Virus record (IMG/VR): IMGVR_UViG_3300035698_035366
Coordinates: 124,001 to 188,000 of that record
Direction: 5' to 3' (one strand)
Length of the DNA stretch: 64,000 bases
Shown piece by piece: positions 2-20,808 of the stretch. The first letter of the stretch is position 1; every line of letters starts with the position of its first letter. Below the pieces are notes generated by a model. It was not told where the DNA came from, did no database searches, and was given only the letters and a program-made list of their open reading frames with translations. The position numbers and the translations under genes are program-made.

Positions 2-1426
2 CACCGCTTTGAAACAAGAGATGCACAAACAGAACAAGATTTTGGTGGACGACCAAAACCAAAATTCCTGTTTGGTGTGCGATTCATAACTCAGTTCAAT
101 TCACCGGCCTTTGGACAATTTTCTGACCAAAATGGCGACGTCGCTTTTATGGTTAAAACTGTTGATAAACCAAAAATTGATTTTGACGTCACAGTTATGA
201 ATCAATATAATAAGCGTAGATTAGTTCAAACAAAAATAAAATATCAACCAATTAATATGCGTTTTTATGATTCAGTAGATGAAAGACTATCAAAATTTAT
301 ATTATCATACATGCAGCATTACTATGGTGATCATTTAGCAGAAAATGTTGATCAATGGAGTTATGATAAAATTTCTTCAGAATTCAATAATGGTGTAGAT
401 GGTTGGGGTTACAGAGGTATTTCCCAACCAGGCCGCTCAAATTCTGCCCCTTTCATGTCACATATTGAACTTTATCAATTCTTTGGTGGTAATTTTTCTC
501 GTTGGGTTTTTGTTAACCCATTGATTACTAGCTTTGATCATGATAATGTTGATGCAGAATCGGGCAATGTTGCACAAGAAGCAAGTATGTCAGTCGAATT
601 TGAAGGACTTCTTTATAGAGAAAAAAATATCCCATTAGCAACATCTAAAGTTGGTCGCGCAGCAATTGATTTCTTCAAGCTAGAAGAGTTCGCTGATAAT
701 TTAGAATTACCTGATGCACTACAAATCGGCGGTTTAAATCTCGGTGGTATTAGTGATCTTGCATCGGCTAGATCAGTTTTTGGTCGAGAACTTGGTAGGA
801 AAACAATCGAAGTTTTGAGCGGTAGCCCAATCGATACATCAGGCATTTCTAGAACATCATCATCGGCATTAACACCGTTTGGTAACTTTGATTTTGGTTC
901 AGTTATTGTTGGTGAAGGTGTTGATGGATTAATTAGTAGCGGTGTAAGTGGATCGACAGGTGCGGTTTCAAACGCCATTAGAGCTGGTACTGCAAACGTT
1001 GCACGTGATGCTCTTAACTTGGTTAGAGGTAATATTCTTGGAACAGGTGGTACTCGACTCAATGACGGCGCTGCCTCGTTTTGTGCTGACCCAGCAACAG
1101 GATCTGGGACTTCACCGTCCGCATCCCCGGCAGGTGCCGCCAAAGCTGTTGGTCAAACAGGTGGGTTTTCCACACCAGGAGTAGCAGCAGATGAAAATTC
1201 AGCAGTTGTACAGTTTGCAGGAGCGGTGACAACTGGTGTTGATACAGTGGTCAAAGGGGTTGGTGATGGTTTACAGTTTGGATTAGAGACCATCGGGCTT
1301 AGAAATTCCCAATCTACTACAGGAAACCAAATTGGAGTAACAGCTAAACCATTTGTTGACCCAGATTCATTAACGCCTTCACAACGGGCTATTCGGGCAC
1401 AAAACCAATTTCCGGATAACACCTGA
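2..1426 (+). CDS. Tail tube/baseplate (T4 gp19/gp48/gp54-like) protein with long Gly/Ala/Ser/Thr-rich C-terminal extension; 5' end runs off the window
   Basis: Frame is open from position 2 (…RPKPKFLFGVRF…), upstream of the ORF-track start at 77. Motifs VKTVDKPKIDFDVTVMNQYN, YQPINMRFYD and ITSFDHD…SVEFE are typical of tube-fold proteins. Confidence 0.6.
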   Translation, partial: HRFETRDAQTEQDFGGRPKPKFLFGVRFITQFNSPAFGQFSDQNGDVAFMVKTVDKPKIDFDVTVMNQYNKRRLVQTKIKYQPINMRFYDSVDERLSKFILSYMQHYYGDHLAENVDQWSYDKISSEFNNGVDGWGYRGISQPGRSNSAPFMSHIELYQFFGGNFSRWVFVNPLITSFDHDNVDAESGNVAQEASMSVEFEGLLYREKNIPLATSKVGRAAIDFFKLEEFADNLELPDALQIGGLNLGGISDLASARSVFGRELGRKTIEVLSGSPIDTSGISRTSSSALTPFGNFDFGSVIVGEGVDGLISSGVSGSTGAVSNAIRAGTANVARDALNLVRGNILGTGGTRLNDGAASFCADPATGSGTSPSASPAGAAKAVGQTGGFSTPGVAADENSAVVQFAGAVTTGVDTVVKGVGDGLQFGLETIGLRNSQSTTGNQIGVTAKPFVDPDSLTPSQRAIRAQNQFPDNT

Positions 1427-1857
1427 TGGCTAAGTATGGTCATGTGCATAGTGGTGAATTTACGCCCAGCAATCCGGCAAAATATAAAGGTTCATATCCA
1501 ATAACATATAGAAGTTCATGGGAACTCACTGTATTCAACATGTTTGATTCGCACCCCAACGTTTTAGAATGGGCAAGTGAAAGCATAAAAATACCTTATA
1601 TGCACCCATTTAAGGGTAGAATGTCATTTTATATCCCAGACATTGTTGCAAAATTCGTGGATAAAAAAGGAAAAACTCATGTTGAGGTTATCGAGATAAA
1701 GCCTTTGAAAGAAACTTTGGCAGAACATGCCAAATCCAGGTATGATCAAGCACAATTAGCGGTTAATCATGCTAAATGGAAATCGGCTCAAGCTTATTGT
1801 GCAAAAGTCGGTATGAAATTTAGGATTTTAACCGAAAAACAAATATATAGAAATTAG
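1426..1857 (+). CDS. Head completion nuclease, T4 gp4-like (TnsA-type PD-(D/E)xK)
   Basis: G-x-F-x-P-x-N-P-x-K-Y, YRSSWE, WASE…IPY, YIPD and IEIKP motifs. Confidence 0.85.
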   Translation: MAKYGHVHSGEFTPSNPAKYKGSYPITYRSSWELTVFNMFDSHPNVLEWASESIKIPYMHPFKGRMSFYIPDIVAKFVDKKGKTHVEVIEIKPLKETLAEHAKSRYDQAQLAVNHAKWKSAQAYCAKVGMKFRILTEKQIYRN

Positions 1858-2597: not shown

Positions 2598-3425
2598 ATG
2601 AAAAAAACATTTATTGAACATTTGATAGAGAGCGATCGGGAATACAGCTACCGAATTAAATCGGTTGTTGATTTTGACGATACCCAAATGGAGAAATTGG
2701 AGAGATTGGTTCAAAAATATGAACTACGTGATATGGAATCTCCAAGAAAGACTATTATTCAAGATCATCCACTTGATTTCCCAGATGTGAACCATGCAGA
2801 AGTTTATATTATTGATATTGTCACTGGTGTACCAGTATCATCATATATATTACAACAAGAAATCCGAGAGAATTTGAAAGTACCGGAAAAGTTTATTGTT
2901 GTTCGTTCTGAGAATGATCCTCTAGAGATTGAAACAGAAAAAATGCTTGCAATGAAAGATATGCGTGATGAAGCTGAAAAGAAAGGCCTTGAACGAGATG
3001 CATTACTTTCAACTTCAAGTGTTTATGTTGAAGATGAAAACTCAGTTCCTGGTGAAGAAATGTATGGGGATATATATAATAAGAGATTTCTAGATACTCT
3101 TGCCCAAATATCAGCAACTCGTTCCCCAGAATTCATTGAAAACAAAGGCACGGGGATTTTCTCGTGGTTGAACAATGAAGTTGACGATGTTCCTGAAATT
3201 ATGACAGACGATAGTTTCAACAGTGGTAAAGAATACGAATATGCTCCAAAACCAACACCGTGGTGGAAAGCTTCCAGCGTTGATCACAGGTTACATGATG
3301 ATTTAAGTTTGGGAACAGCCGGAAACTTTGATGACGATTCAAAATTATATCATCAAAAATATAAAAAGATTGATGGAGAAGAAGTCCATATGATCCGTAA
3401 AACAGAGGGAATTCAAGATGACTAA
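2598..3425 (+). CDS. Hypothetical late/virion protein
   Basis: 275-aa ORF after GCTAAATA (2556). N-terminus MKKTFIEHLIES resembles the E-site leaders of the other head proteins. Confidence 0.6.
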   Translation: MKKTFIEHLIESDREYSYRIKSVVDFDDTQMEKLERLVQKYELRDMESPRKTIIQDHPLDFPDVNHAEVYIIDIVTGVPVSSYILQQEIRENLKVPEKFIVVRSENDPLEIETEKMLAMKDMRDEAEKKGLERDALLSTSSVYVEDENSVPGEEMYGDIYNKRFLDTLAQISATRSPEFIENKGTGIFSWLNNEVDDVPEIMTDDSFNSGKEYEYAPKPTPWWKASSVDHRLHDDLSLGTAGNFDDDSKLYHQKYKKIDGEEVHMIRKTEGIQDD

Positions 3426-17115: not shown

Positions 17116-17919
17116 TTGCATATGACGTCAAGAGATTTAGATCAATTTTATACGAAAGAATCAATTTCTTTGGAATTGTACAATATATCTAAAAACTATA
17201 TTACCGATTTTAATGATTACGATATTATATTGGAACCGTCGGCCGGATCAGGATCTTTTTTCAAATTATTTCCTGAAAAACAAAGACTTGGTTTAGATAT
17301 CGAGCCAAAATTCAACGATATAGTTAAACAAGATTTCTTTGAGTTTAAACCAAATCCATTTTTAAGTTATATAACAATTGGAAATCCTCCATTTGGTAAA
17401 AATGCAAGTTTAGCAATTAAATTTTTTAATAAATGTTCTGAATTTTCTAATTATATATGTTTTGTGGTCCCTAAAACATTTCGTAAAGTTTCGTTACATA
17501 ATAAATTAAGTTTAAACATGCATCTTATATATGATAAGGAATTGCCGGAGAATTCATTTATATTTAATGATAATCCATATAATGTACCATGCTGTTTCCA
17601 AATTTGGCAGAAAGCTACAACGAAACGGAAAATTATCCCCCCTATTTCTTATCATACCGATTTTGAGAGGGTTGATGATGTTTCCCTAGCAGATTTTATT
17701 TTTCAGCGCGTTGGCGCGCGCGCTGGAACATTAAAAACAGACAATCTTCTAAAATGGGGGAAAACTAGTCATTATTATATCCGCTCAAAGATTGATAAAC
17801 AACTTATTATTTCTAGATTCAACGAATTAAACTTCGATGAAGTTAAATATAATACTGCTGGAAATCCAAGCATCTCATATTCTGAAATCATACGTTTATA
17901 TACAGATAGATATACTTAA
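17116..17919 (+). CDS. DNA adenine (amino) methyltransferase
   Basis: DQFYT, motif I EPSAGSGSF, motif IV GNPPFG. Confidence 0.9.
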   Translation: MHMTSRDLDQFYTKESISLELYNISKNYITDFNDYDIILEPSAGSGSFFKLFPEKQRLGLDIEPKFNDIVKQDFFEFKPNPFLSYITIGNPPFGKNASLAIKFFNKCSEFSNYICFVVPKTFRKVSLHNKLSLNMHLIYDKELPENSFIFNDNPYNVPCCFQIWQKATTKRKIIPPISYHTDFERVDDVSLADFIFQRVGARAGTLKTDNLLKWGKTSHYYIRSKIDKQLIISRFNELNFDEVKYNTAGNPSISYSEIIRLYTDRYT

Positions 17920-18033
17920 ATTATTAATCAGCGCAGGTAATACCAAGTACTCGTTAAATTATATTGAAACCATTACTTGTTTTATACTATAGTAAATATA
18001 GTAATAATAATAACAAGGCTAATAAACAAAGTA

Positions 18034-19062
18034 ATGGCAAAAGACCAATGCACACTAGTAATTGAAGATGAAGTCAACATTAAGTTCAACAATTTAGATC
18101 CAGCAACAAGGCGGAAAGTTGTAACAGAACTAAAATTCTTTGTCCCTTATGCACGTCACACACCAAGCTTCAAGCTTGGTAGATGGGATGGCACTATAAG
18201 CTTAGCCACAACAGGTGGTCGTACTTTCTTCAACCTTCTTGACCGTGTCCTTCCCATAATTATGGATGAAGGTTATGAAATTAAAATTGAGGATCAGCGG
18301 GCTAGTCTTGAACTAGAATTTCCAAAGGCAACGGTTGATATGTTCTCCGATACATTATGGCCAAAAGGTCATATGAATGAGGGAGAACCAATCATTCTAC
18401 GGGATTACCAAGCAGATGTTATTGATGCGTTCTTGCGCAACCCACAGAGTTTACAAGAGATTGCCACCGGCTCCGGTAAGACGATCATAACGGCGGCTCT
18501 TTCAAAACTTTGTGAACCATATGGAAGAACAATTGTTGTTGTCCCAAATAAGGATCTAGTCACACAGACAGAAGCTGATTATATCAACCTTGGACTTGAT
18601 GTTGGTGTATTTTTTGGTGACAGAAAAGAATGGAATAAAACTCATACTATTTGTACATGGCAATCATTGTCGGTTCTTGATAAAAAATCTAAAAATAAAT
18701 TGGCCCTAACCGATGAAGAACTAAACGATTTCCTCAACAATGTTCAAACTATTATTGTTGATGAATGTTTTCACGGGGATTCGTTGGTATTAACCCCAAA
18801 TGGATATATACCTATAAAAGATATTAAATCGGGAGATATTGTTGTTAATTATGATGAAAAAGAGAAATTATTCAAAAACGATGTTGTTAAACAAATATAT
18901 GAAAATTTAACAAATTCATCTAAGGAAGAAATGCTTGAACTTGTATTTGATAATGGTAAAATAATTAAAGTTACAGCTAATCACAAATTCCTAACAAATA
19001 AAGGCTGGATTAGGGCCGATGAATTAAATGAACATCTAACCATTATTGACATAAATACATAA
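18034..19062 (+). CDS. uvsW: UvsW-like SF2 helicase N-terminal half fused to split-intein N fragment
   Basis: LRDYQ Q-motif and IATGSGKT Walker A. The protein ends IIVDE followed by CFHGD…TANH…, an intein N domain. Confidence 0.9.
   Translation: MAKDQCTLVIEDEVNIKFNNLDPATRRKVVTELKFFVPYARHTPSFKLGRWDGTISLATTGGRTFFNLLDRVLPIIMDEGYEIKIEDQRASLELEFPKATVDMFSDTLWPKGHMNEGEPIILRDYQADVIDAFLRNPQSLQEIATGSGKTIITAALSKLCEPYGRTIVVVPNKDLVTQTEADYINLGLDVGVFFGDRKEWNKTHTICTWQSLSVLDKKSKNKLALTDEELNDFLNNVQTIIVDECFHGDSLVLTPNGYIPIKDIKSGDIVVNYDEKEKLFKNDVVKQIYENLTNSSKEEMLELVFDNGKIIKVTANHKFLTNKGWIRADELNEHLTIIDINT
18766..19059 (+). mobile_element. Split intein N fragment (IntN, 98 aa)
   Basis: Block A CFHGDSLVLTPNG…IKDIKSGD and block B IKVTANHKF, then TAA at 19060-19062. 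Confidence 0.9.
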
Positions 19063-19081
19063 AGCTAAAGGAGATGTATTT

Positions 19082-19975
19082 ATGCCAAAAAAATTTAATA
19101 TAATCAGATTTAATCAATTATTAATGAAACATAATCAAATATTACAAGCCAAATATATCAACAAACAAATAATGCTTACTAATGGAGTTGAGATTATCAC
19201 AATTCCGGAAGTTAGAAAATGTAAACGTCGGGTAATGAATGAATCTATTGAATATATTACCAGATTTGATTTAATATATTCCGGTAATGAAAATTTAGCT
19301 AAAAACGCATTACATGAAGCAAAATCTAAATCAGCATCTGTTGGTGGTAAGAAATGTCAAGAAAAGCATGGTGATTTAATAAAGAAAAATCTTAACACTG
19401 GCATACCTTGGAACAAAGATACTCAAGGTAATTATCCATATTCATTTCCATGTACCAAACAAACCAGAGAAAAAATAAGTAAAGCTAATTCAGGAAAACA
19501 TAATGGAATGTATGGTAAGAAAATGTCAGAATTTGATAAGAGTTATCGAAGCGAACTAATGAAAAATAAAATCAAAAATGGTGAATTTACACCTAATAGT
19601 AATAATAGAAATACTCATTGGGATTCGCATTATGATGGTAATAAATATAGAAGCTCATGGGAAGCACTTTATCATGCTAGTGATCAGGCGGCAGAATATG
19701 AAACTCTTCGAATACCATACAATATAAATGGTGTTGAGCGAATTTATATAGTTGATTTTGTAAATCATTCTACTAAAAAGGCAATCGAAGTAAAACCAAA
19801 ATCACAATTACAAAATTGCTATGAGAAAATAGAAGCATTAAAAGAATGGTGTTATAATAATAATTATGAAATGATAATAGCTGATGAAGATTATCTTCAA
19901 AAAATAGATAAAACAAAAATTAATTTTTCGTTGTTTGATGAAAAAACATTAACTAAAATTGGTAATATTAGATGA
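19082..19975 (+). CDS. Free-standing homing endonuclease (NUMOD3-like DNA-binding segment + TnsA/gp4-like nuclease domain)
   Basis: TREKISKANSGKHNGMYGKK, then YRSSWEA…IPY…YIVDF…IEVKP. Own RBS AAAGGAG; different frame from the two intein halves. Confidence 0.8.
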   Translation: MPKKFNIIRFNQLLMKHNQILQAKYINKQIMLTNGVEIITIPEVRKCKRRVMNESIEYITRFDLIYSGNENLAKNALHEAKSKSASVGGKKCQEKHGDLIKKNLNTGIPWNKDTQGNYPYSFPCTKQTREKISKANSGKHNGMYGKKMSEFDKSYRSELMKNKIKNGEFTPNSNNRNTHWDSHYDGNKYRSSWEALYHASDQAAEYETLRIPYNINGVERIYIVDFVNHSTKKAIEVKPKSQLQNCYEKIEALKEWCYNNNYEMIIADEDYLQKIDKTKINFSLFDEKTLTKIGNIR

Positions 19976-20076
19976 AATTAGTTTCTACAAAAATTATTGA
20001 AAAACCAGAAACCGTATATAATTTAGAAATCGAAAATGATCATAATTATATTGTTGAAGGAGCAGTTGTTTCAAAT
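19972..20076 (+). mobile_element. Split intein C fragment (IntC, 35 aa)
   Basis: Block F VYNLEI…HNY and block G VSN followed by +1 Cys (20077-20079). Confidence 0.9.
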
Positions 20077-20808
20077 TGTCACATGGCAAAGGCTGATGTT
20101 CTAAAAGGTCTTCTAACATCTGCATTCAAGGATTGTCCAATTCGTTGGGGGTTAACCGGGACCATTCCAAAAGAAGATCACGAATTCCTTTCAATTCTTT
20201 CAAGTATTGGCCCAGTCGTTGGAAGCCTAGCAGCAAAAGATCTTCAAGACATGGGTGTTCTTTCAAACTGTCATGTTGAGATTTGTCAACTTCAAGATCA
20301 GCAAGTATTTGGTGATTATCATTCAGAGCAAAAATTCTTATCAGAAAACCCCAACCGTTTAGATTGGGTCTCAAAATTTGTTGAAAATATTTCTAAAGAT
20401 GGCAATTCTTTAATTCTTGTAAATAAGATAGCGACGGGTGAAGCGTTACAAGCAGCAATTCCAGATTCAGTGTTTATATCAGGCAAAGTCAAAAGCGTTG
20501 ATCGAAAAGACGAGTATGATGCAGTATCGTTGGAAGATGGTAAAGTAATCATTGCAACTTATGGAGTTGCAGCCGTTGGAATTAACATACCGCGTATCTT
20601 TAATTTGTTCTTGTTTGAGCCTGGCAAATCCTTTGTCCGGGTTATTCAAAGCATTGGTCGCGGACTACGTAAAGCAAAAGATAAGGATTATGTTCAAATT
20701 TATGATATAACATCTAGTTGTAAATTCAGTAAGAGACATTTAACAGCTAGAAAACGTTTTTATAAAGATGCTGGGTACCCTTTTCGTGTAACCAAAGTTA
20801 AAATATGA
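19972..20808 (+). CDS. uvsW: Split-intein C fragment fused to UvsW-like helicase C-terminal half
   Basis: MKLVS…VYNLEIENDHNYIVEGAVVSN|CH, then WGLTGT (motif III), IATYGVAAVGINIP (V) and QSIGRGLR (VI). Confidence 0.9.
   Translation: MKLVSTKIIEKPETVYNLEIENDHNYIVEGAVVSNCHMAKADVLKGLLTSAFKDCPIRWGLTGTIPKEDHEFLSILSSIGPVVGSLAAKDLQDMGVLSNCHVEICQLQDQQVFGDYHSEQKFLSENPNRLDWVSKFVENISKDGNSLILVNKIATGEALQAAIPDSVFISGKVKSVDRKDEYDAVSLEDGKVIIATYGVAAVGINIPRIFNLFLFEPGKSFVRVIQSIGRGLRKAKDKDYVQIYDITSSCKFSKRHLTARKRFYKDAGYPFRVTKVKI

Follow-up and report, generated by a model that had tools for sequence, protein, structure and literature searches.

We analysed a 64,000-nucleotide (nt) stretch of the IMG/VR virus record IMGVR_UViG_3300035698_035366 (positions 124,001 to 188,000 of that record; hereafter the window), in which the gene for the helicase UvsW is divided by a split intein and an open reading frame (ORF) of 297 amino acids (aa) lies between the two halves. 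The ORF listing and direct reading of the sequence place three consecutive genes on the + strand: uvsW-N/IntN at 18034-19062, the 297-aa ORF at 19082-19975, and IntC/uvsW-C at 19972-20808, where IntN and IntC are the N- and C-terminal pieces of the intein and the exteins are the flanking pieces of UvsW.

18034..18765, + strand: UvsW N-extein, with superfamily 2 helicase motifs I to II, ending ..IIVDE (Pfam ResIII, DEAD and UvsW_N; PHROG DNA helicase; alignment)
18766..19062, + strand: IntN, 98 aa, with Cys1, block B T-A-N-H and the stop TAA at 19060-19062 (Pfam Hint; alignment)
19082..19975, + strand: free-standing endonuclease ORF, 297 aa (homologues, alignments, AlphaFold2 model)
19972..20076, + strand: IntC, 35 aa, ending ..VVSN (Pfam Intein_splicing positions 123-155; alignment)
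20077..20808, + strand: UvsW C-extein, starting CHMAKAD.. (Pfam Helicase_C; PHROG DNA helicase)

The intein interrupts helicase motif II between E and C (DE|CH), with one Cys at intein position 1, directly after the extein Glu, and a second at extein position +1, which is both the splicing nucleophile and part of DECH. Pfam recognizes Hint in IntN at 33 bits, above the curated cut-off, with Intein_splicing and other families below theirs, and the T-A-N-H block is invariant among the aligned IntN sequences. IntC ends in ..SN followed by the extein Cys, its penultimate residue being Ser where His is commoner. Across alleles, the IntN of the window is 55-62% identical to those of Salmonella phage S16, Proteus phage PM2 and most of the metagenome alleles compared, and 45% identical to one further allele. 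The sequence marks of a split intein (Cys1, block B TxxH, C-terminal Asn and Cys +1) are therefore all present. We also found the features that Dassa et al. 2009 used to describe fractured genes: two gene halves on the same strand, each carrying an in-frame intein half, an intervening free-standing endonuclease ORF, a spacer with a hairpin and late-promoter-like element, and a 3' overlap. Judged on its sequence, uvsW of this phage is a fractured gene of a known kind in a new host gene, and uvsW thereby joins the known targets of fracture by split inteins.

The intervening ORF, a predicted nuclease

The 297-aa ORF can be divided into three modules, listed here together with the putative catalytic residues and a second nuclease of the same phage that serves as a point of comparison.

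19082..19396, + strand: N-terminal domain, aa 1-105, a small alpha/beta unit with a long helix (domain model with a predicted local distance difference test score, pLDDT, of 89.9)
19454..19531, + strand: NUMOD3 DNA-binding motif, aa 125-150 (Pfam PF07460, 31.3 bits, cut-off 20.4)
19550..19972, + strand: PD-(D/E)XK nuclease domain, TnsA/gp4 type (Pfam PF08722, PHROG 15427 and 218, fold search)
19661-19663, 19754-19756, 19787-19789 and 19793-19795, + strand: putative catalytic residues E194, D225, E236 and K238 (alignment)
1426..1857, + strand: gp4-like head-completion nuclease of the phage itself (Pfam PF08722, 68 bits; PHROG 218 'head closure', 4.6e-42)

A sequence-only reading of this DNA had proposed a TnsA/gp4-type nuclease whose C-terminal domain parallels the protein at 1426-1857 and is preceded by a NUMOD3-like segment, and our searches bear out all of these points. 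The start of the endonuclease at M1 agrees with its homologues. Within the nuclease domain, Pfam matched Tn7_TnsA-like_N (PF08722) at aa 207-266 with 30.1 bits against a cut-off of 26.5, and precomputed matches to PF08722 exist for most listed homologues. In PHROGs the ORF matched an unnamed family at 1e-40, PHROG 15427 'endonuclease' at 4e-31 to 5e-31 and two 'head closure' (gp4) families; its C-terminal 148 residues span the entire gp4 profile of PHROG 218 'head closure' (3.4e-7). Direct comparison with the gp4-like protein at 1426-1857 gave a BLASTP E value of 4e-6 and 30% identity over 94 aa, with the blocks GEFTP(N/S), YRSSWE, IPY and IE(V/I)KP in common.

Structure comparison pointed in the same direction. 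An AlphaFold2 model of the endonuclease, built with 36 homologues as input, reached a pLDDT of 86.8, and its top Foldseek matches were the TnsA structures 1t0f and 1f1z (probability 1.00 and 0.99). The VIA structural alignment to TnsA had a Z score of 8.7 and a root-mean-square deviation of 3.0 over 116 residues (model positions 157-273); the Z scores of other nucleases were at most 5.9 (VRR_NUC 5.9, Vsr 5.6, I-Bth0305I 5.6). Two alignments, of 27 and of 36 family members, show R190-S-S-W-E194, D225, E236 and P239 to be invariant, and K238 is invariant in the clade of the window (36 sequences, 45-58% identical to the window enzyme). The conserved columns form the classical E..D..ExK pattern, and we found no conserved catalytic His in the alignments. 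Together, the Pfam, PHROGs and fold searches and the conserved residues support a predicted nuclease that is TnsA/gp4-like and not Vsr/EDxHD-like.

Other assignments fared less well. No Vsr or DUF559 family appeared among the Pfam matches of the endonuclease at E<=1, and we rejected an EDxHD/Vsr-like identity on this ground together with the E..D..ExK columns and the low Vsr score. The JGI label 'very-short-patch-repair endonuclease' carried by homologues P0023 and P0110 was not reproduced, the family and fold searches favouring a TnsA-like enzyme. For a Hef-like enzyme (phage U5 Hef) there was no PHROG support, none of the families matched at E<=1 being named Hef-like. The ORF is also no gp4 orthologue, given its 150 extra N-terminal residues, its location inside uvsW and the separate gp4-like gene at 1426-1857. 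Beyond gp4, no paralogue of the endonuclease was found in the 296-kb genome, and an NCBIfam search with the window enzyme gave 0 matches.

The enzyme's N-terminal part differs among relatives. Against the PDB, the N-terminal domain gave single-helix matches only (best Z 4.7), and an Atlas feature search returned leads at 0.80 only, to viral NUMOD3 proteins. In the relatives from S16, PM2 and Escherichia phage HY03, Cys-rich segments take the place of this domain. Such modularity is what target-recognition domains would show, and we presume that the N-terminal domain aids target recognition. Matches of homologues of the enzyme to TIGR01453 (group I intron endonuclease) are weak, below threshold and fall in its DNA-binding part.

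Distribution and probable mobility of the cassette

A word search recovered 526 homologues of the endonuclease at E<=1e-3; the 120 listed are mostly of about 300 aa, 45-58% identical to the window enzyme and nearly all metagenomic. The three-gene layout recurred in 80 of 80 IMG/VR loci retrieved with the family profile and on the encoding contigs of all three homologues that we looked up. It is also present in culture, in S16 (gp114, gp114.1 and gp115) and its relatives and in PM2 (endonuclease relatives at L001:2785-3660 and L003:2785-3660), where the annotation reads merely 'DNA helicase / hypothetical protein / DNA helicase'. In PM2, a second gene annotated as a homing endonuclease lies between uvsW and uvsW.1. 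A megablast search of the locus against cultured phages gave no match. Prevotella phage Lak-B4 (L105:1582-4378), one of the gut Lak megaphages, has a UvsW-like helicase split at the same site, IIDE|CCHPDTL..; its IntN shares 39% identity with that of the window, and stops under translation table 11 interrupt the region matched by the endonuclease.

Cassette and host gene have diverged to very different extents. Between the window and S16, PM2 or allele L060, the exteins are 22-27% identical, compared to 55-59% for IntN, 49-60% for IntC and 39-49% for the endonuclease. With exteins so divergent and cassettes so similar, the cassette appears to have moved between very different uvsW genes, landing at the same codon. 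The two exteins were searched one by one, and the C-extein alone found uninterrupted uvsW genes (L095-L100) whose C-exteins are 58-64% identical to that of the window, as close as occupied alleles. The nearest cultured phages by C-extein are jumbo phages such as Phosso (Sinorhizobium), Atu_ph07 (Agrobacterium), PA5oct (Pseudomonas) and Salicola phage SCTP-2, all absent from the endonuclease matches and from the top IntN matches. The empty alleles (L095-L100 and L102, around position 3000) read DETH or DEVH, and all occupied alleles DE|CH. This difference seems to fit co-conversion, in which the +1 Cys would travel with the intein.

Since its closest cultured UvsW relatives are the jumbo phages Phosso, Atu_ph07, the PA5oct group and SCTP-2, the window probably derives from a T4-related jumbo phage. 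The whole genome (G000) has 296,119 bp and a GC content of 38%, and it comes from a salt-lake metagenome. A weak IntN-like tblastn match (E 0.18) outside the window, at G000 C1:64219-64422, might mark another intein.

Two other genes also harbour relatives of the endonuclease. One is the gene for the large terminase, which in HY03-like T4-type coliphages is split at MIYIDE|C.. and holds an endonuclease relative of 199 aa between the intein pieces (HY03 locus L002:2010-4862, intein ends read from translations). The HY03 intein is atypically divided, with an IntN of about 41 aa and an IntC of about 107 aa ending ..SHN|CAFIPNF, and Pfam found no intein in the HY03 terminase pieces. The same arrangement occurs in many T4-like coliphage records, annotated as two terminase genes and an 'endonuclease'. 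The other is phoH of Campylobacter phage CP21 (L104:436-3298), where an intein with an endonuclease relative has entered at VIVDE|C..; intein, endonuclease and C-terminal part of phoH are each spread over several small ORFs, so this copy looks decayed. The insertion sites in uvsW, terminase and phoH all follow the Walker B/motif II acidic pair of a P-loop NTPase. The comparative marks of homing are thus present (a conserved site for the gene within the intein, presence/absence polymorphism, and disagreement between cassette and extein divergence), and they support, at the level of sequence comparison, a mobile homing cassette.

Based on these results, we consider it likely that the 297-aa ORF encodes a homing endonuclease, free-standing and from a lineage so far undescribed as such, acting as outlined here and expressed late as discussed in the following section. 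The TnsA/gp4-type nuclease domain would be tethered by NUMOD3 and the lineage-specific N-terminal domain, which probably read the target DNA. The ORF occupies the place where endonucleases usually insert into a Hint-fold intein, and the intein is thereby split into an IntN of 98 aa and an IntC of 35 aa. In a mixed infection, a uvsW gene without the intein would be cut by the enzyme close to the motif II codons (..VDE|xH..). Recombinational repair from the occupied allele would then copy the whole cassette of IntN, endonuclease gene and IntC together, co-converting flanking codons that include the +1 Cys required for splicing. Protein trans-splicing would then rejoin the UvsW halves, so that the insertion would not cost the phage its helicase. 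We only infer that the enzyme cleaves DNA and at which exact target, that the motif is active as a promoter, that the hairpin has a function and that the halves are trans-spliced, and the role of the endonuclease in 'driving the split', as the sequence-only reading put it, would be an evolutionary one that we likewise infer.

Several observations weigh against this interpretation. The S16 and PM2 endonucleases carry R for K in the ExK motif. PDB sequence searches, with the single protein and with a profile, returned nothing useful, so the link to TnsA comes from Pfam and fold. No cassette-skipping joints were seen in contigs of the same samples, which does not show that they are absent. To our knowledge, no enzyme of this lineage has been characterized.

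The R for K replacement in S16 and PM2 and the decayed copy in CP21, with enzyme and intein in several ORFs, would also be expected if the ORF were an inactive relic, left by an endonuclease that once delivered the intein and is now decaying at a junction that serves only to express the helicase halves. We find this highly improbable, as the ORF is full-length in every locus of the window's clade, and the putative catalytic residues and about 40 other columns remain invariant at 45-58% identity, which indicates purifying selection on the protein.

The same intact catalytic residues, in hundreds of alleles and for longer than the classic homing cycle predicts, could speak for an enzyme that has been domesticated or otherwise benefits the phage (for example by marker exclusion of related phages or by gp4-like DNA processing), its location in an intein being a frozen accident. 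Such a role would suit the alignment of the nuclease module with the whole gp4 'head closure' profile, T4 gp4 being a non-specific DNase needed for morphogenesis (Benler 2020, as cited in PMC7824862), and late expression would coincide with packaging. Yet the phage keeps a separate bona fide gp4 at 1426-1857, the enzyme bears DNA-binding modules of the homing-endonuclease type (NUMOD3), it is always accompanied by an intein, in three host genes, and empty alleles exist. We judge domestication decidedly unlikely and continue to favour a homing endonuclease.

A broader proposal is tentative and may well prove too wide. TnsA/gp4-type nucleases with NUMOD3 could form a further family of homing endonucleases, recruited from the head-completion nuclease module of the phages themselves. 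The family would specialize on split inteins placed directly after the 'DE' of Walker B/motif II in P-loop NTPases, namely UvsW, PhoH and the large terminase subunit, and would have spread among phages as far apart as jumbo phages of salt lakes, T-even phages of Salmonella, phages of Campylobacter and the Lak megaphages of the gut. If homing by this enzyme is borne out, it would bring a new catalytic lineage to the few homing endonuclease families and would mean that a module of virion assembly (gp4) and of transposases (TnsA) has been reused for homing. The recurrent 'DE|C' site in three ATPases lends itself to tests for a shared DNA or protein-coding signature read by the enzymes. Protein ligation might profit from the locus too, since it provides a natural Cys1/Cys+1 split intein (98 + 35 aa) that has been sampled widely and in many sequence variants. 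As the cassette is present in cultured phages (S16 and its relatives, and PM2), specificity, homing and trans-splicing are directly testable.

The endonuclease leader and the IntC overlap

The 19 nt between the IntN stop and the endonuclease ATG, with the adjoining codons on either side, carry the following elements, and a candidate promoter lies upstream of the locus.

17964..17993, + strand: candidate sigma-70-like promoter upstream of uvsW-N (TTGAAA, 18-nt spacer, TATAGT; consensus scan, 10/12 matches)
19046..19088, + strand: RNA hairpin with the Shine-Dalgarno sequence in its loop (minimum free energy -10.8 kcal/mol)
19050..19057, + strand: late-promoter-like element of T4 type, CATAAATA (NATAAATA), within the final IntN codons (conservation, genome-wide placement)
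19068..19073, + strand: AAGGAG as Shine-Dalgarno sequence, with the ATG at 19082 following after 8 nt (read directly)

The sequence-only reading had placed CATAAATA at 19050-19057 in the last IntN codons with a ribosome-binding site after it, which is exact to the nucleotide, and had taken it for a late-like promoter. Of 44 distinct junctions, 34 have the motif NATAAATA, mostly as CATAAATA, 32 nt upstream of the ATG, and 4 more have it in a shifted register. It sits in different IntN reading frames, coinciding with ..I-N-T codons in some alleles and enclosing the IntN stop TAA in others, and hence appears to be conserved as DNA and not as protein. Contigs of other phages from the same salt-lake samples match only 19041-19114 at 85% or better, with flanks that diverge. 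Most of 35 aligned alleles retain a Shine-Dalgarno sequence at this position, in the variant forms AAAGGAG or AAAGCxG. Across the 296-kb genome, ATAAATA stands 15-60 nt upstream of a predicted ORF start at 41 of 126 sites (32%, compared to a background of 2.7%; 12-fold), the highest such placement among the 21 A5T2 permutations; such sites include one before the large terminase gene (5810) and one before a virion protein gene (7496). T4-type late promoters are TATAAATA-like elements at about -10, upstream of late genes.

The sequence-only reading had not noted that a hairpin would bury the start codon of the endonuclease. Its 5' arm CATAAATACAT (19050-19060), containing the promoter motif, pairs with the 3' arm ATGTATTTATG (19074-19084), containing the start codon. 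The hairpin has a z score of -3.39, with 1 of 200 shuffles equally good, and 97.5% of stem cells across 35 distinct alleles can pair. An RNA beginning at 19062-19065, the expected start for a T4-type late promoter, folds with only -0.4 to -0.6 and is essentially unstructured. The arms are perfectly palindromic, which creates a second CATAAATA on the minus strand at 19077-19084, antisense into IntN/uvsW-N; we suggest no function for this copy.

These elements suggest how the proposed homing endonuclease could be timed, after the pattern known for T-even homing endonucleases. In read-through RNA from the uvsW promoter, CAUAAAUAC(AU) would pair with (AU)GUAUUUAUG and hide the start codon. RNA from the internal NATAAATA, starting about 6 nt downstream at roughly 19063, would be without the 5' arm and translatable. 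The sigma-70-like site at 17964..17993 is a candidate source of the read-through RNA; the consensus scan yielded 20 sites where 17.5 were expected, making it weak evidence for a promoter. The start of uvsW is probably the ATG at 18034 rather than the TTG at 17977.

Part of the evidence runs counter to this timing. The first base of the motif is C, where the T4 consensus has T, leaving the late-promoter assignment with its conservation as DNA in favour and its first base against. S16 and PM2 are without promoter and hairpin, and their endonuclease ORF begins within the last IntN codons. Variation in the stem consists of 10 wobble-compatible one-sided changes and 8 unpaired cells with 0 compensatory changes, so conservation of the hairpin could stem from promoter and ribosome-binding-site constraints alone. 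We found the sequence in no RNA runs; only salt-lake DNA runs matched.

The C at the first base and the S16 and PM2 alleles would agree with CATAAATA being no promoter at all, conserved only because it is the 5' arm of a hairpin that controls translation or is linked by chance to the intein end, with the endonuclease made solely from read-through uvsW RNA. Each NATAAATA octamer is near or below its compositional expectation genome-wide, and the perfect palindrome would account for the conservation of both arms. We think a motif without promoter function unlikely: no other A5T2 word is as concentrated as ATAAATA 15-60 nt upstream of ORFs, terminase and virion genes included; the 5' arm is conserved beyond what pairing needs (C in 33/35 and A in 34/35); and a hairpin unable to open would silence the gene permanently. 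A putative internal late promoter remains the reading that we prefer.

At the other end of the ORF, all 41 distinct alleles have an overlap of the endonuclease stop with the IntC start, of 4-56 nt and most often of 14 nt; the window has the tightest overlap, with the IntC ATG at 19972 and the ATGA at 19972-19975 exactly as first read. The coupling of IntC translation to the endonuclease, also proposed from this overlap, is harder to generalize. A Shine-Dalgarno-like 4-mer made of endonuclease-tail codons precedes the IntC ATG in 19 of 35 distinct alleles and is missing from that of the window, where together with the tight overlap this makes coupling plausible as one possibility, without extending to the family at large. 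The hairpin would silence endonuclease translation on read-through RNA, and strict coupling would starve the helicase of its C-terminal half there; the two would conflict unless IntC also initiates on its own.

The gene just upstream of uvsW (17116-17919) matches a PHROG of unknown function at 2.6e-71 and, weakly, a DNA methyltransferase family (3.7e-8).

Comparison with known systems

In the literature that we searched, the nuclease lineage is not previously tied to homing. We found no work linking UvsW with a split intein, a TnsA-like nuclease with phage homing, or S16 with inteins, many subscription papers lying outside the search. Other mobile endonucleases are already known to target uvsW, namely T4 SegE and an intron in LIMEstone1, and later reports on fractured genes and inteins describe an HNH enzyme in MIJ3 PolB and an endonuclease VII-like enzyme in actinophage inteins.

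The mobE gene of Aeromonas phage Aeh1 reportedly encodes an HNH enzyme within an intein-less split nrdA. Like the T4 intron endonucleases, it shares with the window a late-promoter element in the 5' arm of a structure hiding the translation start, as well as a split essential gene; the control elements of the window, unlike those of mobE, are deduced from sequence alone. The mobE leader hairpin is due to Gibb and Edgell 2007, as cited in PMC2677866.

Among nucleases, TnsA, the Tn7 transposase subunit (1f1z, 1t0f), is the best structural match and belongs to the same Pfam family, PF08722; it differs in that identity is 16-19% and that the window enzyme is without the TnsA C-terminal domain, the TnsB/TnsC partners and transposon ends. 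T4 gp4 is already regarded as a TnsA-like restriction-fold nuclease (PMC7824862). The whole gp4 module of about 145 aa aligns with the window enzyme, the GEFTP and YRSSWE blocks included. T4 gp4, however, is a single-domain protein, reportedly a non-specific DNase (Benler et al. 2020; PMC7824862), and is encoded in a head/neck cluster, whereas the window enzyme is encoded within an intein and carries two further modules at its N-terminus. I-Bth0305I and the EDxHD enzymes (PMC3239194) have in common with it a restriction-endonuclease-like fold and a catalytic domain C-terminal to DNA-binding modules, which can include NUMOD3, and some of their members occur in fractured genes; the window enzyme differs by its classical E..D..ExK in place of EDxHD and by its Z of 5.6 to I-Bth0305I compared to 8.7 for TnsA. 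I-Ssp6803I (PDB 2ost) also has a classical PD-(D/E)XK active site, but it is of an unrelated lineage, intron-encoded, tetrameric and without NUMOD, and is absent among the fold matches listed.

The closest parallels at the level of the locus are the fractured genes of Dassa et al. 2009 (PMC2677866), an arrangement found mainly in T4-like phages. Their host genes are gp41, IMPDH, DnaE, NrdA, NrdJ, ligase, terminase and one unknown gene, and 15 of 16 endonuclease leaders have a promoter-in-hairpin design; a 3' overlap is also described. The window resembles them in IntN and IntC sizes within the described ranges, a leader hairpin with a late-promoter-like element and the overlap with IntC. It differs in its uvsW host, in a spacer of 19 nt compared to 27-51 nt, and in its enzyme, NUMOD3 with a TnsA/gp4-like PD-(D/E)XK domain, where only GIY-YIG and Vsr-like endonucleases were described, in keeping with the earlier suggestion that a different family is at work here. 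The split point of the HY03 terminase is the unusual one that Dassa et al. noted for their terminase locus (PMC2677866).

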